Sequence record: OR670491.1
DNA: 64,000 nucleotides
Direction: 5' to 3' (one strand)
This document shows positions 1,440 to 61,022 of the stretch, piece after piece. Below the pieces are notes generated by a model. That model was not told the origin of the DNA. It ran no database searches and was given only the letters and a program-made list of their open reading frames with translations. Both the position numbers and the translations under genes were made by a program. Position 1 is the stretch's first letter, and each line of letters begins with the position of its first letter.

Positions 1440-3137
<1,698 letters not shown>

Positions 3138-11964: not shown

Positions 11965-13122
11965 TTATGCAGTATAACCAACAATGACGATGGATGAATC
12001 AAACGGCTCTACAGATCGTACTGTAACGTTGTCATCAGCATCTAGTTCAATCTCACATAGTACTGTATGATTCATATCATCATATACTTGTACTTGTGGA
12101 TATAACTTACCATGTGTTGCTTTAGGTATACTTAGTGTATACATCATTTCAGAATCAACTACCCAATCACTTGAAAGTATTTCATCGAAGTAAGGTGTAG
12201 TCTGGATTGTTTTACCAATTACGCTCAAAGAGATTGGTTCATTATCACTTTGATATACAGTGATATTACCACTTGCATCTACATTGATATCAACACCAAT
12301 GAGAAAATCATTTGCGTTGTAAGCTTGTAGTACTAGATGATCGCCACGGTCATGCACGACTTCAGGTAGGACCGCTTTATATAGCCCATCACTTACGAAA
12401 TCAAACTGTGCCAGTGCGATGTTCGTCACAAATCCAATATCCTCACCTGATTCCAACACGTCAAACTCAACTGTTTTAGTATTGTATATATCGGAAGTAA
12501 GTATTACAGTTCCCTTACCTTGTTGTGTAATAGCATCAACAGGAATGCTAAACACGTCATCGATAATTTCAGTAGTAAAGTATTCAGTACCGTCAGGTAG
12601 GATTACTGTGATTTTCATACCAGTAGTATCAATCACTTCACCTGCGTTAAACAAGCGACCACCAACCAAATCGTCACCAACAAACACTGGGAACATAATG
12701 ATGTTATCAATGTCATGGTCTACAATCCCACATTCAGGGACGTACATATCATATAGAGTGGTTGAGCTACCTAGAATTGTTTTATGTAAGAGGAACTTAT
12801 AAACGAACCCGTTTGGATCAGTACTAAGATTTTGTTCAGTATGGCCTCGAATGAAGAAAGAGTTTTTCTTAATTTCACTGAGTAGTTGATCATTGGTTTT
12901 ATTGTAGTTAAGCTGATACCCATTCGTATCAGTTGTTGTTAGTTGTACTTTGCGATAGATAACGTTAGTTTTTGGATCTAGAATATCGTATAGTCTGTGG
13001 CTTCGTTGACGATAGATTCTCATGTTCTTGAGCTTCGTACCATCTTGTAAATACACACCATCAACAATATACCCACATTCACCAAACTTATAACGTCCAG
13101 CAGCAGCAATTGACCTTGACAT
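11965..13122 (-). CDS. putative late/structural protein with two C-terminal beta-rich repeats
   Basis: Start at ATG 13122 (MSRSIAAAG) with GGAGGGAG RBS and TAAATA-CGT-TATAAT upstream; duplicated H...QxY(N/D)....(I/L)..D..(G/D)N(I/V)TV domain. Confidence 0.55.
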   Translation of the reverse strand: MSRSIAAAGRYKFGECGYIVDGVYLQDGTKLKNMRIYRQRSHRLYDILDPKTNVIYRKVQLTTTDTNGYQLNYNKTNDQLLSEIKKNSFFIRGHTEQNLSTDPNGFVYKFLLHKTILGSSTTLYDMYVPECGIVDHDIDNIIMFPVFVGDDLVGGRLFNAGEVIDTTGMKITVILPDGTEYFTTEIIDDVFSIPVDAITQQGKGTVILTSDIYNTKTVEFDVLESGEDIGFVTNIALAQFDFVSDGLYKAVLPEVVHDRGDHLVLQAYNANDFLIGVDINVDASGNITVYQSDNEPISLSVIGKTIQTTPYFDEILSSDWVVDSEMMYTLSIPKATHGKLYPQVQVYDDMNHTVLCEIELDADDNVTVRSVEPFDSSIVIVGYTA

Positions 13123-17957: not shown

Positions 17958-18920
17958 TTGAAAAAGCTAGATCTAAATGCAATTGCTGATGAAGTACTGG
18001 ATGAATGTTTTGCTAGTGAAGAAGTCAACGTATTAGAGGCAATTGATGCCGTTGAAGAAGAACATGATGACCACAAGTTCGAGAAGCCTAACACTGGTAT
18101 CAGTTTGACTCGTCCTAAAGGTGTAACGAATGAAATGCTCATCCAGGAAGTACGTGATGGCATTAACGTTGAAAAGAACATTGATCTTCTGGTACGTTAC
18201 AACTACCCAATGATTGTTAGTACTGCTCGTAAATGTACATGTTTCATCCCATTTGAAGATAAGATTTCATATGGTGTTGAAGGTTTAATGCGAGCGATTC
18301 ATACATTCGATCCTACCAAGAACGTTAAGTTCATTACCTATGCAACAACAACAGTGTATATGACAATCTATAACGAAAGTGCAGACGCTAACTACCTAGT
18401 GCACTTCCCACGTTATATGAGTGTTAACAACATTTATGTGAAACGTTGTGTAGAAGCGTACCAAAAGAAATATGGTAGGTTCCCAACTCCAGAGATGGTC
18501 GCTGAAGAGACTGGTATTGAGATTCAACACGTTAAGAATTGTCTAACCTACACCAATACTTATATGGCATTGGATATGAAATTGAGTACTGATTCAGAAA
18601 GTACCTTGTCTGACATTGTTACTACAGTTGATCCTGATTACAACTTAGGTGCAGAAACTATCAGTATCCCACTGGTACAAAGTATTGCAGATATGATGCA
18701 TAATCTATCTGAAAAAGACCGTGAGTTGATTGAACGTGTACATGGTATTGGTTCAGCACAAGAACCAGAAACGCTACGAGAAATCATTGAGAGCGGTTTT
18801 GAAGATGAGAAGGGTAAAGTCATTACTGCTCGTTCTTCCTTGCACCGTAAGTACTCTGACGCAATGGAACGCCTACGTAAGATGGTGAAGTCCAGAGGTT
18901 ATGAGTTCGAAGATTTTTAA
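17958..18920 (+). CDS. phage-encoded sigma-70-family RNA polymerase sigma factor
   Basis: Region 2 NYPMIVSTARK...GVEGLMRAIHTFDPTKNVKFITYAT, region 3 GRFPTPEMVAEETG, region 4 LSEKDRELIERVHGIG...TLREI. Confidence 0.85.
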   Translation: MKKLDLNAIADEVLDECFASEEVNVLEAIDAVEEEHDDHKFEKPNTGISLTRPKGVTNEMLIQEVRDGINVEKNIDLLVRYNYPMIVSTARKCTCFIPFEDKISYGVEGLMRAIHTFDPTKNVKFITYATTTVYMTIYNESADANYLVHFPRYMSVNNIYVKRCVEAYQKKYGRFPTPEMVAEETGIEIQHVKNCLTYTNTYMALDMKLSTDSESTLSDIVTTVDPDYNLGAETISIPLVQSIADMMHNLSEKDRELIERVHGIGSAQEPETLREIIESGFEDEKGKVITARSSLHRKYSDAMERLRKMVKSRGYEFEDF

Positions 18921-38760: not shown

Positions 38761-39329
38761 ATGTTATTACTATATTCAAAGCGTTTCTGGATTTCTTTCA
38801 TTGTACTTTCGCTAATCGGCTTCGGTGTGAGTATAATCTTTTCGTGGGATGAATTGGGTACATGGTATTATGAAGTTCCGTGGTACATGAAGATAGCTCC
38901 TTGTTACGCGGCATTGTTCGTGTCCTTCCTTATTGTTGTCTTCAGTGAGGATTAGTTGATGTAGTGGCTGATAAATCACATGAATTACTAAGGGTACGTT
39001 GGCCTCATCTTAATGAGAAGAAATAAACATTTTAAAGGGTTGACTTCTGTCAGCCCTTTTTGCTATAATTATTTCATTAACTAAAGAGGTAATACATGAA
39101 ACTATCTTTTATACGTTTAGCAGAATTCTTCGGTACTGATATCATTACTTTACAACAAATTGCAGACAATACTTCATTAAGTACACAAGAAGTACTTGAC
39201 TTGGATGTAATTAAGTGCGATAATACTTCCATCGATTACAAAGAAGGTCTTGTCGAAAAAGATAAGATTCAGGCTAAGATTAATGGTGCTGGACGGGTTC
39301 AGTACTGGAAAGGAGTTTTAAGTAAATGA
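38761..39329 (+). other. two small CDS (38761-38955, 2-TM; 39096-39329)
   Basis: ORF track; cassette copy at 39037-39069 precedes the second. Confidence 0.65.
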
Positions 39330-40750
39330 AAATTTATATTGATAAATTTGGAACGACTTATGAATATTATGATTATACACATTATAATTCATATATACAA
39401 AAAAATCATAACCAAATGTCACCTTATTTGCATTATGAAGATTTAATGGAACTATTCTCTAAAAATGTAAATTCTATTAAATTTATTGGTTTTAAAGATG
39501 CAACATGGAAAAGTTCACATACGCATGTGTATTTTGAATATGATAATATGGTATATGAACATTCAATATCAAATATCAAAACAAAATTCGCTGATCATAG
39601 ACATAAACCAGGTAGAATATGTAGAACCTTGGAACAAATTATAAATGAGTCCATTTATATATTTAAAAAATATGATAAATTTAATTTTCATAGCAGTGCA
39701 TCATTTAATGGAGCACGAACTATAATCAATTATACAATTGAAGGACGTGAAAGAATATTTTCTATATCATTCAATTCATTAATAAAAGATTTTAAAGGGG
39801 GAAGCCCATGTTATTCATATGAAGAAGTAGAAAATATATCTATAAAAAAATTAAATGAACATAATTTGAGATTTATCTCAATTAGTAAATTTAATGGTGT
39901 GTTTAGTTGTATTGAATATGAACAACCAACACAGAAAGGAAAAAAATATGTTGATTTTAATATATTAATCTATAATGAATGGAAAGGTAATCTACCGAAT
40001 ATAACTAATGAAGAGGTGAATAATCGAATTTCAGAAAAAATGAAAAAACTAAATATCAATGAATATGAAATTGTAGAATATAACAGTACTAGGAGCATGG
40101 TTGAATATACAGTTGATGATATTTCATATACAACTAGTTACGATAAGATTATGCATCCAACTTGGAAAGGTAATCCAAGATATACAAAAGAAAGAATAAT
40201 AAAATTGTCGAAAAAATATTGCAAGGGTAAAAAATTTCAATTTAATAAAATAATTGGTAATGTTAAAGGAATTAATACTATCATTGAATTAGAACTTGAA
40301 AATGGTATGTTTATATATCCAAAATTTATACAATTAAAAGGAGGTTCTGACTTTAATACATCCACTGATGGTAAGATTTTAACAGAAATAATTTATCCTT
40401 TGTTCGACAATTATATCACACAAAAACGTTTTGAAAATTGTAGAAATCCTGAAACTGGATACTTGTTGCCATATGATTTGTATGTTCCAGAATTTAATTT
40501 ATTATTAGAAAAAGATGGAGTGCAACATTACAATCCAACAGCATATTTTAATAAAACATATGAATCATATTTGAAATTGAGAGAGAGAGATGAATTTAAA
40601 AACAAATATGCCATATCAAATGGTTATAATTTCATGCGAATAGCAGATTATGAAGATCATGAAAAAATATTGAAATCTTTCCTTAAACTCATTGAAGAGA
40701 ATCCAGGAAAGCAAATCGTGCAGATCTATGGTGAAGTACAAATTATCTAA
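39326..40750 (+). mobile_element. putative homing endonuclease (C-terminal Vsr/DUF559-like nuclease)
   Basis: 474 aa, visibly more AT-rich than its neighbours; C-terminal LPYDLYVPEFNLLLEKDGVQHY; internal repeats ending in KG(G/N)xP. Confidence 0.7.
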
Positions 40751-45668: not shown

Positions 45669-45671
45669 AAA

Positions 45672-45690
45672 GCCAGTACAAAGTACTGGC
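45672..45690. terminator. bidirectional terminator
   Basis: GCCAGTAC-AAA-GTACTGGC flanked by A and T tracts between convergent blocks. Confidence 0.8.
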
Positions 45691-45696
45691 TTTATT

Positions 45697-46902
45697 TTAT
45701 ATACCACGACTGGGTATTTGATATAATTGGAATTTAGTGTAGTAATCAGAAACTGTTGTCCCGGCTGCTTGTGGGATATAGCCACTCAAATACACATCCC
45801 CTTGATTATCCATATACACTGTTGTACATTCACTTGAACAGAATAACTCGGTGTTAGATACTTTAGGAGCATCAACTGGTGTTACAAATGTAGTACTTGA
45901 TGTTGTATTACCGCGACCGAGCTTACCATACGTGTTTATACCACACATATAAAGTGAATCGGCAGTTTTAACCGTAAGCCCACCATATGTTAATGAATTT
46001 GATTTCATTTCCATATCATCTGATATTGGTAGAGTGGAGATAGTGGATAATACTGTCCAAGAATTAGCGGATGAACCATTACCCAAGTTACCATCGGACT
46101 GAATCCCACTTGCACGAACTGTATATGTATTATTCGTGTTGTGTTTATATACAACCCATGATGCACTCCCACCGAGTTCATAATGTATAACAGTATTGTT
46201 GGCGAATGCACCCATTTGTGTCCATACTCTAATGTTAGTTGCATTATTACTTATACCAAGCGAACCCCATGTGTTTTGACCAGTGACCCAAAGTGTTTTA
46301 TCAATTTTCTGCACAATCACTGCACTTGAACCTGTTTTAACACTATCAACATTCGTATTAATTGACGTAAAAGTTGATAATCTAGTGGTTGTGTTATTAC
46401 CAAAATATCCCTGTGTATTCGTCCCCATTCCATATAGCGTACCATTTTCAAGTAAAACAAAAATACCCTCACCTACAAGTTGAATGTCCTTAATTTGGGA
46501 CAATTGTGTAGCATTGAATACTGATGTAAAATATGAAGTACAATCAGTATAAGTACTGGCAGTACTTAAACCTGCACCAATAGCTTTACCAACCCCACTG
46601 TAATAAAATTTATTATCTTCAGTTTGGATTAAATTAAAAGTACCTTGGGCTGTTCTGAAACGTTTTACATTTTGGTATATTAAAGTCCATTCTTTTACTT
46701 TCGCATTATGTACACCATTCCCGAATCCATAGTTTTGTGAAGTAGTTCCACCTATACCCATTAAGTCTCCATTTTTATATAATAGTAAGAGTGCTGTTGC
46801 TGGAATTACTGACGCACTATAACCATTGTACATAAAGATTTCTTTCACTTCAGGAACTTTCATTTTATTAGCGTATTTAACCATTCTTGCAAAAGGTAAC
46901 AT
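45697..46902 (-). CDS. RCC1/BLIP-II-like beta-propeller protein (MLPF family)
   Basis: MLPFARMVKYAN leader; repeats such as LYGMGTNTQGYFG and LWVTGQNTWGSLG. Confidence 0.8.
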   Translation of the reverse strand: MLPFARMVKYANKMKVPEVKEIFMYNGYSASVIPATALLLLYKNGDLMGIGGTTSQNYGFGNGVHNAKVKEWTLIYQNVKRFRTAQGTFNLIQTEDNKFYYSGVGKAIGAGLSTASTYTDCTSYFTSVFNATQLSQIKDIQLVGEGIFVLLENGTLYGMGTNTQGYFGNNTTTRLSTFTSINTNVDSVKTGSSAVIVQKIDKTLWVTGQNTWGSLGISNNATNIRVWTQMGAFANNTVIHYELGGSASWVVYKHNTNNTYTVRASGIQSDGNLGNGSSANSWTVLSTISTLPISDDMEMKSNSLTYGGLTVKTADSLYMCGINTYGKLGRGNTTSSTTFVTPVDAPKVSNTELFCSSECTTVYMDNQGDVYLSGYIPQAAGTTVSDYYTKFQLYQIPSRGI

Positions 46903-46979
46903 AAAATCCTCCTTTATTCATTATACTATATTTAGCCAAAAAGGAAAAGCCAGTACTTGAGTACTGGCATTATAAAGAA

Positions 46980-48155
46980 TCAAATTGTAGGAAGTAGGAA
47001 TTCTTTCATAACAGATGAACTACTCGCACTGACATTATCTGGTGATTTCCCTGCGTAGTATAATTTATTATTAATGAACATATATAATGTTGCATCATTC
47101 CCTGCAACAAGAGAAACCTCTTTATTAAAAACAACACCACTAGGTAAAATTGCTTCAACGAATGAACCTGATTCGCGTGTGGTATTATTTGCTAATTGAC
47201 CATTGTTATTATAACCAGTACTATAAATTTTACCTGAACTATAATACACAAGCCCACGTGTACTAGTGTTTTCTATACGAAGGAATTCACTATCATCTGG
47301 AACTGAAGTTGATAAAGTTGCATTTAACTTATAAGCGGATGTTGTATTATTATTACCCAACTGACCATAACCTTGATATCCTAGTGTATACATAGGACAT
47401 GATTCTGGTGTACCTTTAGTTATAACACCAAAATAATTCGAACTACAAAAAGCGTCTATAACTTCTGTAACAGGTGTACCCTTATATTGAACCCAAGGGA
47501 ATACATATGATTGTTGTTTGCCATTCCCTAAAGTACCAGAGCTTGTTGTTCCGGTACGCCATATTGTATCATCAAGTTTAATAATCCAGTTAGCAGATGT
47601 TATAGATGAACAGAATTTTTTAACATTATCAATTAAGTATGTAAATTTATTATAATATGATGCAGTGTTTAGCCCAAACTTAGCACCAGTATTATCACCT
47701 AACAAATATAAACTATTATCAGTACCTAAAATGACAGCATAATCATAACCTACATATATCTCTTTTATTTTTGAAATACCAAATTGTGTAAAATAGCTTG
47801 TACATTCAGTGAATGTTGTTACTGTATTTGTTGTATTATTACCTAACCATTTATCAAAACCACTAAAAAAGAATCTATCATCATTTGTGCGTATTAGACA
47901 AAAAGCGTTCCCTGTACTACACCAGAAATCTTTAACATTGCTATATATTTTTGTCCATTCCTGTACCTGTGTCGTATTACCTAGACCAAAAATACCACCA
48001 TTTTGAAGACCGATGGCCCATACTGAACCATTTTTATCAAGTAGCATTGTAGTTGTAAATGAGTATCCAGATGATGGTGTAACCAATTTAACAAAATTTG
48101 GGATATATGGCACGACCTTATTTCCGTACTTAGCCATCCTTGCAAAAGGTAACAT
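46980..48155 (-). CDS. RCC1/BLIP-II-like protein (MLPF family)
   Basis: MLPFARMAKYGN; YSTGYNNNGQLA repeats. Confidence 0.8.
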   Translation of the reverse strand: MLPFARMAKYGNKVVPYIPNFVKLVTPSSGYSFTTTMLLDKNGSVWAIGLQNGGIFGLGNTTQVQEWTKIYSNVKDFWCSTGNAFCLIRTNDDRFFFSGFDKWLGNNTTNTVTTFTECTSYFTQFGISKIKEIYVGYDYAVILGTDNSLYLLGDNTGAKFGLNTASYYNKFTYLIDNVKKFCSSITSANWIIKLDDTIWRTGTTSSGTLGNGKQQSYVFPWVQYKGTPVTEVIDAFCSSNYFGVITKGTPESCPMYTLGYQGYGQLGNNNTTSAYKLNATLSTSVPDDSEFLRIENTSTRGLVYYSSGKIYSTGYNNNGQLANNTTRESGSFVEAILPSGVVFNKEVSLVAGNDATLYMFINNKLYYAGKSPDNVSASSSSVMKEFLLPTI

Positions 48156-48229
48156 AATTTCTCTCCTTTATTCATTATAATGTATTTACCCAAAAAAAGA
48201 AATGCCAGTACTGGAGTACTGGCATTATA

Positions 48230-49573
48230 TTATTGTAAAGGTATTTCAGTTAAGGTGCTATATTGTGTTCCGTTATATATACCCCTCCAGTATAATTTAC
48301 CTTCAGTACTAATAACTAATAAACCATATGTTGTAAACCCTAGAGTTCCTCCGACATACATAGCATCTTTTATTCTAATACCAATGTCTTCATATGTAAA
48401 CTCTGATACTTCACCAGCATTCCACGCTGGACTGTAATAATAATCAGTATAAACACCATGTGCTTTATATAGGGACGTCAATCCAGGTTCAAAAATTACA
48501 GTTCCGCAGTAGTTCATTCTTATTTTAGTACTGGATGAAGTTGGTATATTACCAAAAATATTATCTTTTAACCCAGTAGTTAGAACGTTGAAACCACCAC
48601 CAATGGAGTTAACGTTATTCACGCCACTTAGACTCATACCAACGTTGTATCCCATGCAATACACACTACTGCTACCATTCCAGTAAGAAAAACCGCCGCC
48701 ACGACCACAACGATATAATTGTGAATTTGAACAGTACATCATACCTTCGTTTGATGCGTCATAGTCGTCTGCTGTTCCAATTGTAGCTACAGTAGTCCAA
48801 GTTTTAATTACTTGGTTTGCACTAGCTGGTGTTTGTATGCCATATCTGATATTATATCCCTTACCGACTATGGTCCCATCTAATAATTTGGCATACAGTA
48901 CTGGTCTAGCCCCATTATAATAAACGTTATTATGTGACATATCAATTGTACTTCGTAATGAAACTGCTTTTTGTGTCAATTGGTTATCTTTAGTAAAAGA
49001 TGAAAAGTAGTAATCTGCTGTGGAGTTGTTTATTAAACCCTGAAAGGACTGACCCATATACCAGACTTCTCCGTTTGAGTTCAATGCTGCCAAAATACAA
49101 CTATATTTGGATGTGTACCCAGTATTAGTGCCTGGACCTTTATCATACCCACCACTGAATACCATATCAACGACATCACCAACGCTAGTGAAATATGACG
49201 AAACATCGATGAATCCAGATGTTAAAAATGGTGCAGTCGTCATCCCTGTATTTGTGAATATTCCATTTGCATATACACCACAAAAATTATACGAACCATC
49301 AATATCCTGTACTATGATACCATTAGAAAGTAACCAAAAGTTTTTTACATTTTTACGAACCAATTCAACACCTGCACCATTATTAGGAGTTATTCCAAAT
49401 GTAATTGCTTTAGTTGTGCCCATGCCATATAAATTCCCATTGGTTGCTAATATTGCACCAAGCCAGTTTCCACCTCCATTACTATTACGACCCATACCAA
49501 TGGAATCGAATTTCTTTACAGTTGGAGCTTCTACTGTATTCCCATAATCAAATAATCTAACAAAAGGTAACAT
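48230..49573 (-). CDS. RCC1/BLIP-II-like protein (MLPF family), divergent
   Basis: MLPFVRLFDYGN; 447 aa with insertions. Confidence 0.75.
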   Translation of the reverse strand: MLPFVRLFDYGNTVEAPTVKKFDSIGMGRNSNGGGNWLGAILATNGNLYGMGTTKAITFGITPNNGAGVELVRKNVKNFWLLSNGIIVQDIDGSYNFCGVYANGIFTNTGMTTAPFLTSGFIDVSSYFTSVGDVVDMVFSGGYDKGPGTNTGYTSKYSCILAALNSNGEVWYMGQSFQGLINNSTADYYFSSFTKDNQLTQKAVSLRSTIDMSHNNVYYNGARPVLYAKLLDGTIVGKGYNIRYGIQTPASANQVIKTWTTVATIGTADDYDASNEGMMYCSNSQLYRCGRGGGFSYWNGSSSVYCMGYNVGMSLSGVNNVNSIGGGFNVLTTGLKDNIFGNIPTSSSTKIRMNYCGTVIFEPGLTSLYKAHGVYTDYYYSPAWNAGEVSEFTYEDIGIRIKDAMYVGGTLGFTTYGLLVISTEGKLYWRGIYNGTQYSTLTEIPLQ

Positions 49574-49645
49574 ATATTCCTCCTTTATTCATTATACTAT
49601 ATTTAGCCAAAAAGGAAAAGCCAGTACTTGAGTACTGGCTTTATG

Positions 49646-50797
49646 TCAATAAACATCCCAAGGTAATGGTGTCTTTCTAAACCCATACCTAGTTGCGTTC
49701 TGCCCATCTCCGGCTATGTATCTACCAGTACCACACTGATATAATTCAGTACTGCTACATATCGCACCACCAATAGTACCACTACCCCACTGAGTTATAT
49801 TGGAATATAATATTGGCAAATCACTACATTTAGTATATAATGCAACAGTAGCAGCACCACTCGCACCACCAAAAACACTTCGGTTCGAACCCGTGTAATA
49901 TATACCATCTGGACTCATAAATGCGGAAGTATAAGTTGTACTACAATCCACTGGACTTCTTATATTATTAAGATCACTTGGGTATACCCTAGCACCATAT
50001 GTGTATACATTACCTGTAGTAGTAATACCATTACCTAACTGACCATTATTTTGTCCACCACATGTAACTAACGATCCACTACCAGAAACAATGGCAGTAG
50101 CATTATAAGAAGTACCTATAACAATAGAAGCTCCCGCCAATAGGTATGGGGCAGGAACTCCGGCTGCATTCCCCTGACCTAATTCACCATTGACATTTCT
50201 TCCCCATCCGTATACAGAAGTGGTATCCAATTGGCATAGTACTGAACCATAACTAAACGTATATCGTATATCCTTCACTGCCGATGGTAAACCACTAACT
50301 TTAGTTGCAACACTAATAACGCCAGAAACGCCTGTTACTCCAGCGTTCGCGTTCAGATTACGTCCATATGCATATAAAGAGCCATCAGCAGTTTTAATAT
50401 GCATCATGCCATCTGTGCAATATAATGTATCTATACTACCCACTGCAACCTCTCCCATACTGGACGTTATATCGTTCCACCCAAGCGTTGTAGTACTAGA
50501 AATTAAGTTATTTCCGGCGTAAAGTATTCTATTATCATTAGTAACTACTACTGTATAATTGGCAGTAACGCCAATTAATCTAACTTTCTCGTATATCTTA
50601 GACCACATTCCTATTGAATTTGTGTTAGTATCCAGAAACCCCAACTGACCAGCGGTATTATATCCAATACCCCACACATCACCTTCACTATCCAATAACA
50701 CTTCATGGGAAAAACCAATCTTAAAATCTTTTATCGTTGGTGTTTCTGGAACAGGTTTAATATTTCCGTACTTAACCATTCTAGCAAAAGGTAACAT
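49646..50797 (-). CDS. RCC1/BLIP-II-like protein (MLPF family)
   Basis: MLPFARMVKYGN; VWGIGYNTAGQLG and VYGWGRNVNGELGQG. Confidence 0.85.
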   Translation of the reverse strand: MLPFARMVKYGNIKPVPETPTIKDFKIGFSHEVLLDSEGDVWGIGYNTAGQLGFLDTNTNSIGMWSKIYEKVRLIGVTANYTVVVTNDNRILYAGNNLISSTTTLGWNDITSSMGEVAVGSIDTLYCTDGMMHIKTADGSLYAYGRNLNANAGVTGVSGVISVATKVSGLPSAVKDIRYTFSYGSVLCQLDTTSVYGWGRNVNGELGQGNAAGVPAPYLLAGASIVIGTSYNATAIVSGSGSLVTCGGQNNGQLGNGITTTGNVYTYGARVYPSDLNNIRSPVDCSTTYTSAFMSPDGIYYTGSNRSVFGGASGAATVALYTKCSDLPILYSNITQWGSGTIGGAICSSTELYQCGTGRYIAGDGQNATRYGFRKTPLPWDVY

Positions 50798-50868
50798 AAT
50801 TCCTCCTTTTATTTGTTATACTATATTTAATAAAAAAGAAAAGCCAGTATCAAGTACTGGCATTATTA

Positions 50869-52059
50869 TTACAATTGTCTAGGTGTATCCAGAACATATC
50901 TATTTGTACTAGGACCACCATCATCATCAGTTCCGGTTGAATATATATTTTTCATATCAGCAGTTAGAAAAGTACGATACGAACCGCGATATATTTTTAT
51001 TTTATCATACATAGAATATGTTATTTCTGACGGCAATGGACATGCAGTAAATTTACCAATGGTAACATCAGAACCAACACCCAATGTGCCAGCATAACTA
51101 CTCGCATTTAAACCAGTTGCATATACACCTGCACTCGTAACTAGTATACTAGATTGTGTTGGGTATCCAGTATGAATTGAATACAAAGTACCGGGTGGTA
51201 AGGTTGTACTATTGTTTCCTAAAACTCCATTAACAGTGCTAGATGTAGTTTTATTTCCCCATGCTCCATTATTAGCTAATCCACCAACTAGAAACTGACG
51301 TGCTCCTGTATTTGGATTCTCCACTAAAGCACTGACTGAACCCATTGAGCATACAGTGTATTGTAACGTTTTTGTGTATGTTGTACTTGGCTGATATAAA
51401 GTATATTCATTATATAAAGTCCATGTAGTGCTGGAACTTATACCGGATGTACCACCACCAATATATAAATTATTTTGTGTATCAAAAAACATTGCACAGC
51501 TATTTGTTGACATTATTTGTGCAATATCAACATCTGGTGTTACAGCTTTAACAAATGAACCATCGGTTATTTGTTGAGTTTTTCCAGTACCATCAGCGAA
51601 TTGTTTAGCCCCACTCCAACCAGTACTCCATATTGTATTATTATCCATTAAGAAAGTAAACCACGTAGTACCTGCATACATCTGTTTAATTGAAGTACTT
51701 GAACTTTGTGTGAACAAATTTTCAATATATTGGTTATAACTTAAAAATGATGTAGTACTAGTTTCTAAACCAATATAACCACCATAGCCACAATAAAAAT
51801 AATTTAAGTCATTATCTTGTACTAACAAAGTTCCTTCTGACATCCAACAATCGTTAACGTTTTCTCTAATTAATGTCCATGTTCTTAATGCAGTGTTGTT
51901 TCCTCTCCCAAACTTCCCAAAACTATTATTGCCTCGTGCGTATAGTTGACCATCAGTATAAAGTACAACAACATCACTATTGATTGGTATTATTTTCTTA
52001 ATTTGAAGAGGCTCAGGTGTAATATTTCCATAATCAAACATTCTAACAAAAGGTAACAT
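50869..52059 (-). CDS. RCC1/BLIP-II-like protein (MLPF family)
   Basis: MLPFVRMFDYGN; LYARGNNSFGKFGRG. Confidence 0.8.
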   Translation of the reverse strand: MLPFVRMFDYGNITPEPLQIKKIIPINSDVVVLYTDGQLYARGNNSFGKFGRGNNTALRTWTLIRENVNDCWMSEGTLLVQDNDLNYFYCGYGGYIGLETSTTSFLSYNQYIENLFTQSSSTSIKQMYAGTTWFTFLMDNNTIWSTGWSGAKQFADGTGKTQQITDGSFVKAVTPDVDIAQIMSTNSCAMFFDTQNNLYIGGGTSGISSSTTWTLYNEYTLYQPSTTYTKTLQYTVCSMGSVSALVENPNTGARQFLVGGLANNGAWGNKTTSSTVNGVLGNNSTTLPPGTLYSIHTGYPTQSSILVTSAGVYATGLNASSYAGTLGVGSDVTIGKFTACPLPSEITYSMYDKIKIYRGSYRTFLTADMKNIYSTGTDDDGGPSTNRYVLDTPRQL

Positions 52060-52136
52060 AACTAATTCTCCAAATTCAAATAATTATAATGTATTTACAA
52101 AAAAAATACCAGCACATATTTCAGTACTGGTATCAT

Positions 52137-53318
52137 TTATGGTAAAATGATAGATTGTAACGAACTCATACCCAATGCTGGAACACTAGCCTGTGGTGCT
52201 GGAGAATTCAATTTTGGTGATGAAACCGCATATGACATTCCTGAACCCAAATCTGGATCAAAAACTACAGCACAATAATTCCCACTATATATAAGTCCAT
52301 TCTTGTATCCTTGTGCACTTTGAATGCATTTCGTGAACGTACCAATATCTGTAGTGGCATTTATTAAGTTCCTCCCACGATAACCGCAGGTGTATATGAA
52401 ATTATCATCGCCTATGTACATACTAGAATCCCCAGAAGAACTACATAGATAAGACATATAAGCACGCATGTTTTTAGGAGCAACTGACAATGTACCTGCA
52501 TAGAATTTATTATTCGAACCCGTAATATCACCATCACCCAATGCACCAAAACTTCCCCAGCCAGTACCATAATATCTCTTATCACTCAAGAATATAATAC
52601 AGTTGTTATTACACATCTTGACTTGATATATCAATGAAGGATCAACCCCAGGGAATGATTCAGTGTATGTTAGAACAGCCAGATCAGTACTAGCATTACA
52701 TTGATGATATGTATTAGTACCAGCGGACAAGATTGTTCCATTAGCTAACAGAATTCTCGCAGTACCAGTACCAGCAGTACAAGCAACTGCACTTCCTGCA
52801 CTTCCGGTGTATATTTGTCTGAAAGTAAAGAAACCAACAGTTTTACTTCCCTGCCCACTCCAACCAGTATTATCAACTCCACACGCCCATACTGAACCAT
52901 CTTCCATGATCATCATTACACCAAAGCGTTCTATTGAAATATAAACAATCTTTTTAGTATCAACTGCACGAAATCTAGAAGTTATATCAGTCCATACCTT
53001 AACACTTACCGCCGTCGCACTGGAAGTAGGATCTTCACCAGCTATCATTATCCTCCCATTGTTAGTAAGATACATTGTCTGACTATAACCAGTACTACAA
53101 AACTTAACACTATCAGTCTCTGGAACTTTTAACCACTCGTTGTAACGTGTTACGTTAGTGTTATTACCTAACTGATAATAGTTATTCATCCCAGATACAT
53201 ATAACACACCATCCTTTATTAAACTATAAGTCGCACTATAGTCACTACAGGTATAACGTGTACCCACAGGTGGCTCAACGACGTTCCCATAATCAAACAT
53301 TCTAACAAAAGGTAACAT
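52137..53318 (-). CDS. RCC1/BLIP-II-like protein (MLPF family)
   Basis: MLPFVRMFDYGN; LYVSGMNNYYQLG. Confidence 0.8.
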   Translation of the reverse strand: MLPFVRMFDYGNVVEPPVGTRYTCSDYSATYSLIKDGVLYVSGMNNYYQLGNNTNVTRYNEWLKVPETDSVKFCSTGYSQTMYLTNNGRIMIAGEDPTSSATAVSVKVWTDITSRFRAVDTKKIVYISIERFGVMMIMEDGSVWACGVDNTGWSGQGSKTVGFFTFRQIYTGSAGSAVACTAGTGTARILLANGTILSAGTNTYHQCNASTDLAVLTYTESFPGVDPSLIYQVKMCNNNCIIFLSDKRYYGTGWGSFGALGDGDITGSNNKFYAGTLSVAPKNMRAYMSYLCSSSGDSSMYIGDDNFIYTCGYRGRNLINATTDIGTFTKCIQSAQGYKNGLIYSGNYCAVVFDPDLGSGMSYAVSSPKLNSPAPQASVPALGMSSLQSIILP

Positions 53319-53394
53319 AATTCCCTCCTTTATTCATTATACTATATTTAATCAAAAAAAAAGAAATGTCAGTACTCAAGTACTGGCATTGTGT

Positions 53395-54574
53395 TTATCT
53401 AAAAGGAACGCACTTTTTGAATTTATATATATATCCAGTCTCACCTTGTTCAGTAAAATACCCAGGGTTTCCAGTCCAGTATAAATCCTCACCTATACTA
53501 ACTACCGATACTGAACCATTACCAATCGTACCAAACCACTCAACATGTGATAAGTCAACACTATCATCAAAGAATTCTATTGGTAATATTGAACCATAAT
53601 TCCCAGAGACTGCGTTGCGGCCTAAACCAGCACCATTAGAATTATATCCCTTACCATTCGTATTAATAATGTTAGTACTGGATTTTATTGCATTAACATA
53701 GGATACTGGTGAAAGTTTATCGAATGAATTTGCTGTTATATCGGTATAGGGATTGGTAGTAAATGATGACCTTATTATACCAGTATTTTCAGAACCACCT
53801 ATAGTCAACTGTGTGTTCCAACCAGCCGCCATTAAAGACAAAGCAGATGTACTACTTTGAACAATCAAACGTGTTACCCATCGTGTAGCTTGTACTGCAA
53901 TTACATGAGAACTACCAAGATTCAATGCAGTAAAACTAGTAATAGGCTTATTATCACCGGTTCCTAATTGATAAAAAGTATTCTCACCACAACGATAGTA
54001 TATACCATCTTTTATATAGTGAAAGTTTCTGCTCATTTCACTAGATGCAATTGCAGATACACTAGTGTCAATTAAGAGTGGAGATGTAATTGGTGCAGTT
54101 GCTGTACCCAATTCACTTGCACCATTCATGCCTATACCATATAACTGACTGTCACTTGTGAGTATTAGCATAGAATTGTTAGTACTGGTTGTTGATGTTA
54201 TTTTTATATCTTTTATAGAACTTGCAGAGATAGATCCAAAATATGATTCACAACGAGTCCACGTTGAAACAGAAGATGATATACCAAACACCGAGTTTGT
54301 CCCGCTATAGTACAATTCCCCTTGTTTTGTTCTAATTATAGTACAATATAAAGAACTCCAGAAATCATCAACACTATAAGGACATAAAACCCATCTATCC
54401 AAAAAAGATGAACCAGTAACTCCCATTTTTGCTGATTGGTTTCCGTCCACGCATATATAATGACCCATCACTGTATAATACGCTTATTGAATTTTCATCA
54501 CTATTAATTTTAACAACAGTATCTTTGACAGGGGCAATATTCCCATAATCAAATAATCTAACAAAAGGTAACAT
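53395..54574 (-). pseudogene. frameshifted RCC1/BLIP-II-like gene (MLPF family)
   Basis: MLPFVRLFDYGN starts at 54574 but is out of frame with track ORF 53395-54471; span 1180 nt = 3n+1; break near 54440-54442. Confidence 0.75.
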
Positions 54575-54644
54575 ATATTCCTCCTTTATTCATTATACTA
54601 TATTTAATAAAAAAGAAAAGCCAGTACTGAGTACTGGCATTATG

Positions 54645-55754
54645 TTATTTTGGTAAATCAATTTTAGTAAAGACTGCAACATCTGCACTTGCACCTGGAA
54701 TGGCGTAATACGATCCAGTACTATATACATCCCCGTCTTTGGTTAATAATGATGTTAATCCGTCACTAAAAGCAACATCACTAATCTCACTAACTTCTAC
54801 AGGTAATTGTAAATTAGCAGCACTATAGATAGCACCCGTTTGAGAATTGTTTAATCCCAAACCACGGTTTCCCCCAATACCTTTCTGATATGCACTAGTT
54901 AATATAATTTGCGTAGCCGTGCTTGTTGCCTCTGAATTTGTCATAAACAAAGGTGAATTATTAGGTAAAGTACTTACAGGAACTGCTTTGAATGTAGTTG
55001 AATCTGAACTAAGAAAGTTTGGAGTTGTACCACATGTGAAATATGATGTACCATTATAGTAATTGAGTGTATGACCACCAATAGCTGCATCTATTACACC
55101 AGAACTACGCAGTCCCCAAATGTTAACTTGTGTTCTGTTCCCTGTGCCATGTAATCCACGGTCATTCCACCCTGAACTATATAACTTATTATCTATGCTA
55201 ATATACATACTATCATTAGGAGTAGACATAACTTTACGCACATTAGAAGCACATAGTGTTAATGTATATATTGATGAAGAACCAATCCCCAATACACCAC
55301 GGTATCCATTAGCCCCAGCACCATAGAGTACTGAACTTGAACTGAGTACAAATATTACACCACCATTGCATACAATATTAGCAATTTGATTCACAGGAAT
55401 TGTATTTGTAAACCACTCCGTTCTATCAACTAATGTAGTACTGTAAGAAGTTGTTGATGATGATGTGAACCAATATGTTTCACCGGATGTCCATATCGTA
55501 TTGTCATTTTTAATAATAACAAGTGTTCGTCCTCCAGTGAAAAAATTAGAAACATCTGCACTTACTAATGTCCAAGAAGATACCGTGTTTTTATTACCAT
55601 TTCCAGATTCACCACCTTGATTTCTGCCTATGTAATATAATTCATGTGAATCAGTCAATACGAATTGACCTTGTGTAGAAGCACCAACTTTTATTATATT
55701 TTTAGGACCAGGTGTAATATTCCCATAATCAAACAGTCTTACAAAAGGTAACAT
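54645..55754 (-). CDS. RCC1/BLIP-II-like protein (MLPF family)
   Basis: Likely start MLPFVRLFDYGN at 55754 (GGAGGG RBS); LYYIGRNQGGESGNG. Confidence 0.8.
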   Translation of the reverse strand: MLPFVRLFDYGNITPGPKNIIKVGASTQGQFVLTDSHELYYIGRNQGGESGNGNKNTVSSWTLVSADVSNFFTGGRTLVIIKNDNTIWTSGETYWFTSSSTTSYSTTLVDRTEWFTNTIPVNQIANIVCNGGVIFVLSSSSVLYGAGANGYRGVLGIGSSSIYTLTLCASNVRKVMSTPNDSMYISIDNKLYSSGWNDRGLHGTGNRTQVNIWGLRSSGVIDAAIGGHTLNYYNGTSYFTCGTTPNFLSSDSTTFKAVPVSTLPNNSPLFMTNSEATSTATQIILTSAYQKGIGGNRGLGLNNSQTGAIYSAANLQLPVEVSEISDVAFSDGLTSLLTKDGDVYSTGSYYAIPGASADVAVFTKIDLPK

Positions 55755-55762
55755 ATTCCCTC

Positions 55763-56965
55763 CTATTGTTGCCATAACTGCGTTGGCATTAATGTTAGTG
55801 TAGTAATACTATAAGTGCCATCAGGCAATCTACCACCATTACCATTCCAGCCACCACATGCATATAATTTATAATCTTTAGTAATTATTATGGTTCTGCT
55901 CCAATCTTTAGATGCCATAAGAACATTGTCATAACCACCACTTATTGCATTAAGATTAAAAATATTCCAAGTTCTAACTAATGTATTAGTTCCATTACCT
56001 TCTTGACCATATGAGTTAGCACCACTACTTCTAACATATGGTGCGTATTGTGCCATAGGTGCACCAATTGATGCATTTCCCATATTACTTGGACAAATAA
56101 AAGTACTGTACTTACTTACATCAACCGTGACCGATGTGTTCCTAATTGGTGTTAGCTGATTTACAGATGTAGTCGTACCATTACCAGCTTGTCCAGTACT
56201 GTTAACCCCGCTATAATATACAGACCCACCAGTAATAAACCACCAAGTAACATCGTATGTAGTACTAATATGTTCTACATTACTAATCACGAATTTGTTC
56301 AAATATACAACAGAACTACCACCACATCCACTTTCACCAAAGTTATCCTTACCACAAAACCATGCATCTTTATTTGATTTGATATAGTGCGTTCCTTGTA
56401 ATGAACATGCCATATGTGTAACTTCACCCATATTAGTCATAACTGTTAGTGTAGGTATGGAATTTTTATTACCAGACCCACATTCACCATTGGTATTTCT
56501 TCCACACGCAATTACTCTACCATCGGTTAATAATATTCTAGTACTTTCACCTATATATACACTCTTGATCATATTAGCCATAACACCAATTTTATTAAAT
56601 GAAGCAGTAACATCAGTCCATGTTCTCAAATAACCATTAACAGGTGTTGCATCTCCATAATCAGAAAATGCACCAACCGACCCAGTGTAGTATATTTTAT
56701 TATCCAAATCAATCATCAATGAACCTTGAACACCAAGCCAAAAGGCTGCACATCGCGTTGCAAGTACTGTAAATGACGCAACTGCTGCTGAATTCCCAAG
56801 ACCAAATTGATAAAAGTTATTACTACCATAACCATATAAAGTATTAGTTGGGCTATGTAGATACATACAGTTTGTATAATGTTGTTGTAAAACATTTGAG
56901 AACTCTATTGGTTCTGGCCCTGGTGCAATATTCGCGTACTTAACCATTCTAGCAAAAGGTAACAT
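55763..56965 (-). CDS. RCC1/BLIP-II-like protein (MLPF family)
   Basis: MLPFARMVKYAN; IACGRNTNGECGSG. Confidence 0.8.
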   Translation of the reverse strand: MLPFARMVKYANIAPGPEPIEFSNVLQQHYTNCMYLHSPTNTLYGYGSNNFYQFGLGNSAAVASFTVLATRCAAFWLGVQGSLMIDLDNKIYYTGSVGAFSDYGDATPVNGYLRTWTDVTASFNKIGVMANMIKSVYIGESTRILLTDGRVIACGRNTNGECGSGNKNSIPTLTVMTNMGEVTHMACSLQGTHYIKSNKDAWFCGKDNFGESGCGGSSVVYLNKFVISNVEHISTTYDVTWWFITGGSVYYSGVNSTGQAGNGTTTSVNQLTPIRNTSVTVDVSKYSTFICPSNMGNASIGAPMAQYAPYVRSSGANSYGQEGNGTNTLVRTWNIFNLNAISGGYDNVLMASKDWSRTIIITKDYKLYACGGWNGNGGRLPDGTYSITTLTLMPTQLWQQ

Positions 56966-57066
56966 ATTTTCCTCCTTTATTTGTTATATCATATTTACCC
57001 CAAAACAAAAACCCTTGACAACCTTTCTGGACTGATGTACAATAGAAAGAAATTAAGGAGAAATGT

Positions 57067-60000
57067 ATGAACAATTCAACAGATCACTACCAAGAACTTA
57101 GTCAAAGTACTAAGAACTATATGAGCTACATGAACGCAGAAGATTTCGCAGTCTTCCTCGGAAAATTCTGTGCAATCAATACCCTCAAAAAAAGTACCAG
57201 TACTACAAGTGTACTTATGTTGAATTGCTTTATAGAGAACATCCTTGAGGAACTTCAAAGCCCTGACGAAAGTAAACGATTCATGAACCTTTTGTTACTG
57301 GCCTCTATATGACTCAAGAACAAATTATGCAGTACTACCTATGTGCTATATCAAAAGAACATCTGAATAGCATAGGGCATCAACAAATTATACTTGCAAA
57401 TGCGAAACGTTCGGCACTTCTGCTTAACTCCATCAGAAATAACCTCATAAGGAATTTTCTGGAAGGTAACGAATCTATGCAGTACTATTTCATCTTAACA
57501 CTACTAATCGAGTACTAAATGAATAAAGAACAATTATTTCAGTACTATAAAAGTACTCTGTCCAAAGGTCTACAGGAAAGTATAGCAGTTGAGTCTGCAA
57601 TACTACAGAACCTTAATGCAGTAGAATTCACAAACAGAATCACCAGGCACGCACAAAATGCTTTACAAGGACATGAAACCTTGAGATACTATCACATCAT
57701 CGTGCTTTGTATGGAGGTATAACAGAACAAATGAATCCAGAACATCTAGAGTACTACAAGACATTCATGAACCACAAGGATCAGTACAGTTACAATACTG
57801 CTATGGGGCATTTTCGATACCATACCAAAAAAATGCAAAAGCACACACTAACACTATGGACTGTACAAGCACAACGAGACGAACTAAGATTGTGTGCTAT
57901 AATTAAAATCCTGAACATCTAAGGAATACTATGTACGAGCACAAAGAACAGTACTTAAACACTCTACCTAAAGATATACAAAGAGCATTCCCTTGTGCTC
58001 CGTGGGATTTAAACAGTAAATGGGGTTTTATTGAGTTCTATAACGATGTATGTATTGTACTGGAAAGTAAGTCCCTCTCAATGCAGTACTGTTCAATCTT
58101 GAACCTAATTTTTAAGTACTAAAACTATGCAAACATTCTATACAGATAGACTAAGCCTTAGAGATACTTTTATGTACGAAACCTTTGTTAAGTACTATAA
58201 CTTAGGTACTCCAATTACAAAGAATATTAATCTACAGCACTGCACACACTCAGCAGTACATGACCACGATCCGTACAGATACATCTTAGCCCTTTTAAGT
58301 ATATAAGGAACACTAATGAAACTCAATAATTACAGTAAACAATACCTAAAGCATTTTAAGTACCTCAAAAGCATTAAGGCTGAATCTATCACCAGCAGCT
58401 ACGTTTACAGCCCTAATGTACTAAAACAATTAAAGTACAAGAAAGAAAAAGTATCAAAGAACCTCAAAAAGTTTCTTAAGCACAAAGACGCAAAGATTCA
58501 GTACTTGAACATTAAAAACGATCATCCAGTACTAAGCCTCAATACAAGTCTAAAGAATCTGGATAACTCTTCATTTATGCTTGAGTTCAATATAAATGAA
58601 AATACTCCAGCGGTTTTTACAATTGCGTATAATAAAGCACAAATCTTTTTAGGTGCAAAAACCGCACTTAAACTCAGTAAAGCACAATTCTGTTTAGGTG
58701 ACCAGTACTACGTAGGTAGTGTACATATTGAACTCGAAAAAGATATGTACTTCGGTAGTACCCACGATAATCCAGAACATAAAGATACTATTGACTTCTT
58801 CAGGAATCTCCCTAAAGAGTATTCAGAAGATGAAATGTTCCAGTGGAGTACTATTATTAAAGACCCACATCTTTGCTACGAAGTGTATAAGAAAGTACAA
58901 GGGATTAAACAAATGATTAAAGAAAATAAAAAAATGTACCAACTCTTGCAGTTCTTAACCGGAGAAAATCTAATTGTTCAAAGACCATAAAGAGTACTAC
59001 AGAAATCAACTCCCAAAGGAATGGCAAATAACATTAGAAACTAACCTAGCACAGATATATACCCAGAAGTTTCTTGCTATGACATGGGAGCACTGCATTG
59101 AGTCAGTACTGAATTCTTCAAATGAATCACAATATCTCAATACTCTTTTACTTGTATATAAATTCTAAAAAGGAATAACAAATGCAATTCCATGAACATA
59201 TGGAGTACTACAGAAAACAACTACCAGAACCTTTATCGATGATAATCGGTTCCAGAAGTTTAATAAGTAATCCCAATTTTCATATGCGTAGTCACTATAA
59301 ATGTACTGCTTCAATTTGTAATGGAACTGCTCACAATGAACCGCACCAGCATCTATACCAAATCCTTAAACTAATATATCAGTACTAAATTATGCACGAA
59401 TATAAAGAGTACTACAAAGATAAAATCCCAAAGTTTCTACAATACCAAATACCAGATGCTGCACTAGGAATAAATGATGTGCACACCTGTACAAGATTCT
59501 ATCAATGCACTGAAAGTTTTCTGGTAGATGATTATGACCAATGCAAGGTGTACTATGTTATTTCACTAATATATAGGTACTAAATCATGCACAACGATTT
59601 CTATATACAAAAACTTATCGACGCTGGCCTGGAAAGCTTCCCGATAAATCCTGTACAAACAAAAGGATTGCACTGGTACTTCATCCCCTGTACTAAAGCA
59701 TGTATAAACCCCAGCAATTACAAGGATCTATACCACAATATATTAATACTCGCATTGAGGTACTAAATTATGCAAGAACACTTGGAGTACTACAGAAGCC
59801 ATCTCCCAAAGAAGGCACAAAGAAACTTCGACCAACAATATATAAACCAAAAGAATCAGTTCTATAATGCATTCTATTCGTCTATGAAAACTATTGCTAT
59901 ACAAGGCAAAGACCCGTACTATAGCATCCTGAACATCATCTTCAAGTACTAAAGCATGTACAGAGACTTCTATATAAGTAAACTTAATCCTGTACTACAA

Positions 60001-61022
60001 ACTCGTATTCCTCCAGCGAAATTTATCCTCAAAACAAAAGCACAAAGGTATGAGTTCAAAAAGTGTACAAAAGAAATACTCAGTACTAAAAGTAATAAGA
60101 ACATATACTATCAAGTACTCGTCCTTATATTCAAGTACTAAAGTACTAAAGGAATAAACATATGCAACACCAGCACAAATTGTACTACACGCAATTTCTT
60201 AATCAGCAACTACAACAATTTATACCTAATGAACCATTACCATATGATCATCCCCTGGGTGCACGCGTTTTCAAAAGAACTATTAATGAACTATTGAGTA
60301 CTACCGACGACGATTCCCTGTACTACTGCTTAATTAAACTTATATATAGGCACTAATATGCAACTCCTGCACAGAGAATACTACACACAATTCCTTAAAG
60401 AGAACTACAGAGATTCAGTCCCCGTAACTCCTTTTGACCCAAATAACCCAAGTTCAATCTTCCTCTTTAACGACGCAACACGTACTGCACTCTGTACTAC
60501 CAATAAACATTGGCACTACGCATTTGTACTTATACTTATATACAGACACTAAGGCACTAACATGAATGAGCACAGAGAGTACTACATAAAGAGACTTCAC
60601 CCCGACCTACGAGATACTATACCATTCGTTCCACATAATATACATGAACCCGTAGTGCAGTACTACTTTAATATAACAGTACAAGCCGCATTAAGTGAAT
60701 ATAGACTTGAGTACTTCACTGTACTAAAACTTATATATAAGTACTAACCCCTTGACATATACTCCAAGAATGATATACTACTTTCTATATAGAAACAATA
60801 CAGAGATAACATATGCACGAACATAAAGATTTCTATGTAAGCCAACTCCCCGTAATAGACCAATTCTGGTTAGCTGATGCAGCACCGTGTAATACAGATA
60901 CTAAGTACGGACAATTGTGCTTTGTTGAATCTATAAAGAAAGTACTACAACAAGATAAAACTAAGTACCGTAAAGAAAAAGACTTGTACTTTAATATAGT
61001 AGAACTTACCTTTATGTTCTAG
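57067..61022 (+). other. tandem array of about 15 paralogous 59-71 aa genes, interrupted by one FQxS-family gene
   Basis: 57309, 57519, 57707, 57931, 58127 (not in track), 58974, 59182, 59392, 59587 (not in track), 59770, 59956, 60162, 60358, 60562, 60813; consensus M.EH.EYY...L ... Y...L.LI(F/Y)(K/R)Y*; 57067-57312 more distant. Confidence 0.8.
58316..58990 (+). CDS. hypothetical protein, FQxS-motif family
   Basis: SEDEMFQWSTIIKD motif; Lys-rich N-terminus. Confidence 0.75.
   Translation: MKLNNYSKQYLKHFKYLKSIKAESITSSYVYSPNVLKQLKYKKEKVSKNLKKFLKHKDAKIQYLNIKNDHPVLSLNTSLKNLDNSSFMLEFNINENTPAVFTIAYNKAQIFLGAKTALKLSKAQFCLGDQYYVGSVHIELEKDMYFGSTHDNPEHKDTIDFFRNLPKEYSEDEMFQWSTIIKDPHLCYEVYKKVQGIKQMIKENKKMYQLLQFLTGENLIVQRP

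Follow-up and report, generated by a model that had tools for sequence, protein, structure and literature searches.

Why would a jumbo phage keep nine strongly diverged propeller genes side by side and begin every one of them with the same short peptide? The question is raised by positions 45697-56965 (minus strand) of a 64-kb stretch of sequence record OR670491.1, hereafter the window, which is 100% identical to the 355,583-bp genome of the Asteriusvirus Escherichia phage vB_EcoM_JNE01 (JNE01); adding 248,000 to a window position gives the position in the record. This interval is filled by nine paralogous genes of family phrog_4219, eight of them intact and one with a single frameshift, and all nine are annotated in the deposited record as 'hypothetical protein'. 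An earlier model-made note drawn from the letters alone (the sequence-only reading) had described a nine-gene tandem array, which holds for the number of genes, except that gene 7 (53395-54574) is frameshifted, leaving eight intact members. We propose, with a probability of about 0.65, that the array encodes late-expressed minor virion proteins that are incorporated through a shared N-terminal tag, carry exchangeable binding heads and diversify by junction-mediated exchange of cassettes. In short, a 12-residue tag probably serves to bring onto the virion a set of binding modules that can be swapped.

A leader peptide conserved apart from the propeller

The 13-nucleotide sequence ATGTTACCTTTTG, which encodes MLPF, is present in exactly nine exact copies in the window, one at each gene start, with 0.22 copies expected by chance. 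All nine leader peptides read MLPF(A/V)R(M/L)xxY(G/A)N and run into a Pro-containing stretch, so that the leader, its linker and its conservation at the DNA level were correctly recognized in the sequence-only reading. In a six-frame scan of the window with the peptide pattern the leader was found in the nine array genes only, and two near-matches to the 13-mer, at 42-54 and 1990-2002, were rejected accordingly, the latter being also out of frame with its containing open reading frame (ORF). Pairwise DNA identity among the paralogs amounts to 76% in the 75 nucleotides (nt) upstream and 83% in the 36-nt leader, and is only 50-54% from codon 13 onwards, compared to 52% in a shuffled control.

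The features of the array, all on the minus strand and in transcription order, are the following (lengths in amino acids, aa).

56966..57000, minus: promoter-like motif of gene 9 (TAAATA, 3 nt, TATAAC) and GGAGG ribosome-binding site; no upstream hairpin
55763..56965, minus: gene 9, first in transcription order; leader and RCC1-like propeller, 400 aa; phrog_4219 E-value 1e-104; Pfam RCC1 repeat above cut-off
54645..55754, minus: gene 8; leader and propeller, 369 aa; phrog_4219 E-value 6e-92
54575..54644, minus: junction cassette 5' of gene 7; hairpin terminator, T-run, TAAATA-N3-TATAAT, AGGAGG
53395..54574, minus: gene 7; leader and propeller with one frameshift; the long downstream ORF matches phrog_4219 with E-value 4e-79
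53319..53394, minus: junction cassette 5' of gene 6
52137..53318, minus: gene 6; leader and propeller, 393 aa; ORF, Pfam, phrog_4219
52060..52136, minus: junction cassette 5' of gene 5; hairpin and ribosome-binding site deviate from the common form
50869..52059, minus: gene 5; leader and propeller, 396 aa; ORF, Pfam, phrog_4219
50798..50868, minus: junction cassette 5' of gene 4
49646..50797, minus: gene 4; leader and propeller, 383 aa; ORF, Pfam, phrog_4219, AlphaFold, Foldseek
49574..49645, minus: junction cassette 5' of gene 3
48230..49573, minus: gene 3; leader and the most diverged propeller, with insertions, 447 aa; phrog_4219 E-value 8e-11; AlphaFold
48156..48229, minus: junction cassette 5' of gene 2
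46980..48155, minus: gene 2; leader and propeller, 391 aa; ORF, Pfam, phrog_4219
46903..46979, minus: junction cassette 5' of gene 1
45697..46902, minus: gene 1, last in transcription order; leader and propeller, 401 aa; ORF, Pfam, phrog_4219
45669..45693, minus: hairpin terminator closing the array

Several codons of the leader vary synonymously while the residues stay unchanged, namely those of Y10 (TAC 34, TAT 26), G11 (GGG 39, GGA 15) and N12, and in other genera the Pro codon is CCA, compared to CCT here, with the same encoded motif. This variation shows that the leader is under selection at the level of the peptide. A scan of IMG/VR for the leader DNA returned 45 loci, of which those in the 121Q genome only are real leader genes and the others are chance matches, so that within this collection the leader, as an exact DNA sequence, does not go beyond Asteriusvirus.

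AlphaFold models, which cover genes 3 and 4 of the nine, leave the leader unpacked against the propeller. In the gene 4 model, residues 1-14 have a predicted local distance difference test score (pLDDT) below 50 and the propeller begins at about residue 20. The idea that the tag serves as the velcro strand closing the propeller was rejected, given that residues 1-12 are unpacked and of low confidence in both models.

The same leader on other folds and in other genera

In distant jumbo phages, all tblastn matches begin at residue 1, and proteins of GAP32, Munch, Yersinia phage fHe-Yen9-04 and Xanthomonas phage XbC2 start with M(L/I)PF, five variable residues and YGN. Among the bodies that follow the tag there are GAP32_002, a phrog_6011 'virion structural protein' with a weak ConA-like match, XbC2_590 (Kelch), XbC2_591 (RCC1 and Kelch) and the non-RCC1 bodies of XbC2_587-589. 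Phage CBB carries seven consecutive genes (CBB_548-554, positions 345865-356530) with Kelch or Laminin_G_3 bodies, and every one of the seven begins with the tag; according to the CBB paper, this phage has no RCC1 homologue and its Kelch proteins lack obvious homologues in other Rak2-like phages. The ConA-like homologue of the 150-kb phage PBES 02 has the same body and a different N-terminus.

The leader peptide is thus kept in at least four genera despite different codons and different upstream DNA, and the fact that jumbo phages of other genera carry it on Kelch and Laminin-G/ConA-like bodies suggests that it behaves as a fold-independent tag. That the leader is a module apart from the head, as the sequence-only reading had it, is borne out by its unpacked state in the models, by its variation on one and the same body type and by its occurrence on Kelch and Laminin-G-like bodies. 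Literature searches returned no mention of the leader peptide, nor of a cryo-EM assignment of the propellers in Rak2-type phages.

Leader proteins in the virions of relatives

The virion table of phAPEC6, obtained by electrospray ionization tandem mass spectrometry (ESI-MS/MS), includes gp003, 005, 006, 007, 009, 010, 549 and 551, and a check of their sequences identified all eight as array members carrying the leader. Eight of the 11 RCC1-like proteins of phAPEC6 are therefore in the virion table, an enrichment over the genome-wide rate with P = 2e-6, and gene 4 of JNE01 is 93% identical to one of them, gp005. Similarly, five of the seven leader proteins of CBB (CBB_548-554) are in its virion proteome (P = 1.5e-4), and gp001 of GAP32 has been found in virions by mass spectrometry. 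The multicopy arrays, the RCC1 similarity and the detection in virions have already been published for these relatives, so that the virion association put forward in the sequence-only reading agrees with published data. Absence from virions combined with early expression is not what was found: the proteins were detected in the virions of relatives and their genes are preceded by a late-type motif.

Bodies of the array proteins

The phrog_4219 profile ('regulator of chromosome condensation' family) matches all nine genes over their full length, with E-values from 8e-11 to 3e-112. PF00415 and/or PF13540 score above the Pfam cut-off in genes 1, 2, 4, 5, 6 and 9, and the PF25390 matches of genes 7 and 8 fall below the cut-off of that model, so that eight of the nine have an RCC1-type match; gene 3 (48230-49573) has no Pfam match. 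The gene 4 model (predicted template modelling score, pTM, 0.81) is a seven-bladed RCC1-like propeller for which Foldseek finds UVR8 with a template modelling (TM) score of 0.76 and an E-value of 4e-20, whereas the gene 3 model (pTM 0.71) is a propeller with long insertions matching UVR8 and HERC2 (UVR8 E-value 2e-9, TM 0.59-0.70). UVR8, RPGR and HERC2 are the top structural matches of the gene 4 model, and the RCC1 chains rank lower (15-17% identity, TM 0.5-0.67). RCC1/BLIP-II propellers had been proposed from the letters; the RCC1-like fold is confirmed by Pfam and Foldseek, but no BLIP-II entry is among the top 50 PDB matches of the gene 3 and gene 4 models, and the proteins are better called RCC1-like propellers.

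The bodies are 21-33% identical among paralogs at the protein level, with one Gly per blade as the only invariant feature, and Ser, Thr, Gly and Asn make up 36-43% of the residues as compared to 23% in other long ORFs of the window, in line with the strongly diverged Ser/Thr/Gly/Asn-rich propellers noted earlier. Weak matches of the array proteins to phrog_11922 ('tail protein') were also observed. A profile search of 1.84 billion representatives gave 118,698 matches, mostly giant cellular RCC1-repeat proteins, and was set aside as useless for tracing the phage family, and a word-based homologue search gave only 8, all of them close relatives or generic RCC1 proteins. At the C-terminus, a hydrophobic-x-hydrophobic-Pro motif lies a few residues before the stop in all nine proteins and in the relatives from GAP32, Munch and Yen9-04; it is probably part of the last propeller strand.

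Two of the genes depart from the common layout. The start of gene 8 lies 8 nt past the stop of gene 9. Gene 7 has a length that is not a multiple of three and is 97.1% identical to its intact orthologue in Turkey5, with one length difference of 1 nt; because the gene is interrupted in PBECO4 and EC22.5-2 as well, the break is probably real and shared rather than a sequencing error. Its long downstream frame is open in JNE01, and the gene may be a tolerated pseudogene or undergo some recoding.

Junction cassettes with a late-type promoter motif

The seven junctions, 70-77 nt long, share one order of elements, consisting of a palindromic hairpin on GCCAGTAC, a T-run, TAAATA-3 nt-TATAAT, AGGAGG and the leader, and have a mean identity of 76%. 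Both arms of the hairpin stem are exact in five junctions and degenerate in three, so that the common hairpin sequence asserted in the sequence-only reading applies to the former. Its statement that nearly every gene has its own promoter, ribosome-binding site and hairpin fits these seven junctions but neither gene 8, which lacks an upstream promoter and terminator of its own, nor gene 9, which as the first gene of the array has a promoter and no hairpin upstream.

To what class of promoter the motif belongs can be judged from phAPEC6, in which TAAATA lies 23-64 nt 5' of the genes encoding the major capsid protein, scaffold, protease, gp228, gp231, wedge, gp245, gp250, gp253 and fibre gp256, a set comprising, besides the major capsid, scaffold, protease, wedge and fibre, other proteomics-positive genes. 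In the same genome TAAATA was not found 5' of nrdA, primase, uvsW, thyA and the late sigma factor gene. The CBB paper reports that ATAAATA precedes structural genes in CBB and GAP32 and likens it to the late promoter of T4. Elsewhere in the window there is only one further exact TAAATA-N3-TATAAT, located about 20 nt 5' of the likely ATG of a phrog_10468 virion structural gene (11965-13122, minus strand). These observations support the late-type promoters claimed earlier, and the array genes would accordingly be expressed late, as inferred from the motif. The listed ORF of the phrog_10468 gene begins farther upstream, at a GTG.

Turnover of the repertoire by whole cassettes

To compare arrays between phages, five were used (JNE01, PBECO4, Turkey5, EC22.5-2 and phAPEC6) and bodies were clustered at 70% identity; the CMSTMSU record was left out, since its array is split into many short ORFs, a sign that the sequence is of poor quality. 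The body types in transcription order are as follows, with s denoting a short or interrupted gene.

JNE01: 1 2 s 5 3 4 10 6 7
PBECO4: 1 2 11 8 3 s 4 6 7 s
Turkey5: 1 2 17 11 12 18 5 13 3 4 14 10 7
EC22.5-2: 8 19 5 13 9 1 2 s 20 3 6 4 s 15 21
phAPEC6: 8 9 16 (9 16 repeated at the record origin) 2 1 12 3 s 4 22 14 15

The five phages hold 22 body types with a median identity of 27% between types, and from 9 to at least 13 copies per array. Order and content differ even between close relatives, and the flanks of the array are collinear between phages; the array is thus far from invariant among relatives in content, order or copy number. Type 1, represented by gene 9, is common to PBECO4, Turkey5, EC22.5-2 and phAPEC6. 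An independent paper lists two 'chromosome condensation regulators' among the few proteins less than 50% identical between two phages of the same species.

The ends of inter-phage homology blocks within the array all fall in junction zones (36 out of 36), although these zones represent only 11% of the array length, which agrees with the proposal of the sequence-only reading that genes are shuffled through conserved intergenic and leader DNA. The gene 9-gene 8 pair, which has no junction between its members, stays adjacent in four of the five phages, and one body type bears different tag variants in different phages.

Two features of the phAPEC6 record were seen in passing. Body types 9 and 16 occur twice across its origin (gp550/gp551, then position 3 and gp001), which reflects either a true tandem duplication or an overlap in the assembly, and three leader-bearing ORFs near 2434, 6063 and 7325 are unannotated.

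A model for the array and its alternatives

According to our model, each gene encodes a 12-residue tag (M-L-P-F-x-R-x-x-x-Y-G/A-N) that is joined through a short linker containing Pro to a highly diverged RCC1-like beta-propeller of seven blades. The tag would be a common signal for incorporation into the virion at low copy number and the propeller an exchangeable ligand-binding head. The repertoire would turn over as whole cassettes are gained, lost or exchanged by homologous recombination within the junction, that is, in the stretch formed by the hairpin terminator, the TAAATA late-type promoter, the ribosome-binding site and the leader codons. As for where the proteins act, external binding to the host surface is the likeliest location and function, because the alternative heads are lectin-type folds and because phAPEC6 and CBB virions bear hair-like fibres to which no protein has been assigned; we put this forward tentatively, at somewhat less than even odds. 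A broader version, held with a little more reserve still, is that Rak2-like jumbo phages use the MLPF-type peptide as a universal tag for docking, by which lectin-like heads (RCC1, Kelch, Laminin-G) share one external socket, possibly the hair-like or hexamer-centre fibres of phAPEC6 and CBB, so that each particle would display a mixed repertoire of host-surface binders exchanged by cassette.

Several observations weigh against the model. The detection in virions comes from relatives and not from JNE01 itself, the phAPEC6 peptide counts are low (1-5), and a co-purifying contaminant is formally possible, although the recurrence in three virion proteomes argues against it. Late timing is read from the promoter motif, and the array lies remote from the head and tail modules, surrounded by small genes of early type that occupy the other strand. 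Nor does a monomeric propeller resemble the classical receptor-binding proteins, which are fibrous; indeed, tail fibres and tailspikes are recognized by a gene in the tail module and a trimeric fibrous or beta-helical build, whereas the models are single globular propellers.

At the DNA level, codons 2-4 and codon 6 of the leader are nearly invariant at synonymous sites among 63 Asteriusvirus copies, which speaks against selection on the peptide being the whole explanation. Since codons 2-4 are frozen within the genus, recombination or a constraint on translation start adds to the conservation of the DNA. Taken further, this near-invariance and the continuity of conserved DNA from the promoter into the leader would fit a conserved start with no role in the protein, which would be a by-product of gene conversion or an element for mRNA or translation initiation, the proteins entering virions otherwise or being contaminants. 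We regard this as very improbable, in view of the peptide being kept in genera with other codons and other upstream DNA, the synonymous changes at Y10, G11 and N12 and the enrichment of leader proteins in the three proteomes.

The main rival places the same proteins inside the particle. The internal proteins of T4 are virion proteins that are expressed late, evolve fast and are otherwise unrelated, but share a short conserved peptide at the N-terminus, and the design of the JNE01 array resembles theirs. The tag could then be a capsid-targeting sequence into the prohead (inner body), and the propellers could be delivered with the DNA, for instance as a variable set that binds or inhibits host proteins, such as those of defence systems. 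In phAPEC6 there is an inner body as well as a prohead protease of the T4 type (gp227c), the low peptide counts in that phage would suit a minor cargo, and RCC1-like propellers, to judge from the top matches UVR8, RPGR and HERC2, are platforms for protein-protein interaction. However, no conserved cleavage site follows the tag: six of the nine proteins have Glu at varying positions within residues 13-25, those of genes 2, 7 and 8 have none, there is no conserved acidic position, and the linkers of GAP32 and Munch differ again. In addition, Kelch and Laminin-G/ConA-like lectin folds are typical surface binders, and rigid 40-kDa propellers would presumably have to unfold to pass the tail tube. 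Ejected cargo is therefore, in our judgement, unlikely but deserving of attention.

It is less probable by far that these are DNA-condensation or inner-body proteins organizing the packaged genome, as the database label has it and as the phAPEC6 authors suggested, offering it as speculation. Papers on the Rak2-like family apply the DNA-condensation label to the array proteins, and the phAPEC6 suggestion rests on the RCC1 name only, as the sequence-only reading had remarked of such labels in general. The net charge of the array proteins is -4 to +4, with no basic character, their identity to RCC1 is 15-17%, and non-chromatin propellers match better. Peptide counts are low compared to abundant structural proteins, and such a role predicts neither 22 body types in five phages with turnover of cassettes nor the Kelch and lectin-like replacement in CBB. 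The label is without support. Among these readings, tagged, exchangeable minor virion proteins remain the one that we favour.

Surroundings of the array

The GC skew reverses over the nine genes, and blocks of small plus-strand genes lie on both sides. A strong sigma-70-like promoter (TTGACA, 17 nt, TACAAT; 57015-57043, plus strand) is divergent from the array, abuts its upstream end and faces the small plus-strand genes, in contrast to the TAAATA-type motifs within the array. Just past the array (57931-61000, plus strand) there is a second tandem family of about 10 mutually related small ORFs of 45-130 aa. Elsewhere in the window we found a tail-fibre- or hydrolase-like protein (1440-3137, minus strand; phrog_30606/32409), an RNA polymerase sigma factor (17958-18920, plus strand; phrog_351) and an HNH homing endonuclease (39326-40750, plus strand).

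Significance and comparison with known systems

For most jumbo-phage genes no function is known, and in dozens of genomes the members of this family bear the mistaken label 'DNA condensation protein'. If true, a fold-independent tag that predicts incorporation into virions would correct these annotations, provide a simple sequence rule for minor virion proteins in the clade and lead to the unassigned surface structures of Rak2-like phages. The array would also be a very clean natural case of cassette-wise diversification in which the substrate of recombination includes a functional coding segment.

The JNE01 array belongs to the known RCC1 multigene family of Rak2-like phages (phrog_4219), represented by phAPEC6 gp001-010 and gp549-551, 121Q_234-248, PBECO4 gp286-296 and GAP32 gp001. 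The Rak2-like literature, as far as it is searchable, gives no account of the shared tag, its non-RCC1 bodies, the cassette junction or junction-bounded mosaicism; the tag with its spread over folds and genera, the sharp boundary of conservation and the junction-bounded mosaicism are, within that literature, apparently new.

Cellular RCC1-like domains (UVR8, RPGR, the RCC1-like domain of HERC2, and RCC1) have the same seven-bladed propeller, with a TM score of 0.76 to UVR8, but the phage proteins are only 15-20% identical to them and bear a phage-specific tag at the N-terminus, with no evidence of Ran guanine nucleotide exchange or chromatin function. In multivalent phages, tailspikes or fibres that are interchangeable carry a conserved anchor module at the N-terminus. 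The organization proposed for JNE01 is comparable, with a common anchor, a variable binding head and several kinds per virion, whereas the JNE01 anchor is about 12 residues rather than a folded domain, the heads are predicted monomeric propellers rather than trimeric fibres and the genes lie outside the tail module. The likeness to the internal proteins of T4 lies in a variable locus whose polymorphic virion proteins share a short conserved peptide at the N-terminus; unlike those of T4, the array proteins have no conserved protease site after the tag and their bodies are large propellers or, in relatives, lectin-like folds.

At the level of DNA, the closest parallel is with the PeSL cassettes of T4-like phages, conserved stem-loop and promoter units that lie between unrelated genes of a hyperplastic region and act as points of homologous exchange (PMC2839356, PMC4122927). 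The junctions of JNE01 are likewise short units of stem-loop and promoter, and all 36 block ends fall there. They differ from PeSL cassettes in that their promoter is, to judge from its motif, of the late TAAATA type instead of early, and in that the conserved unit reaches 36 nt into the coding sequence.

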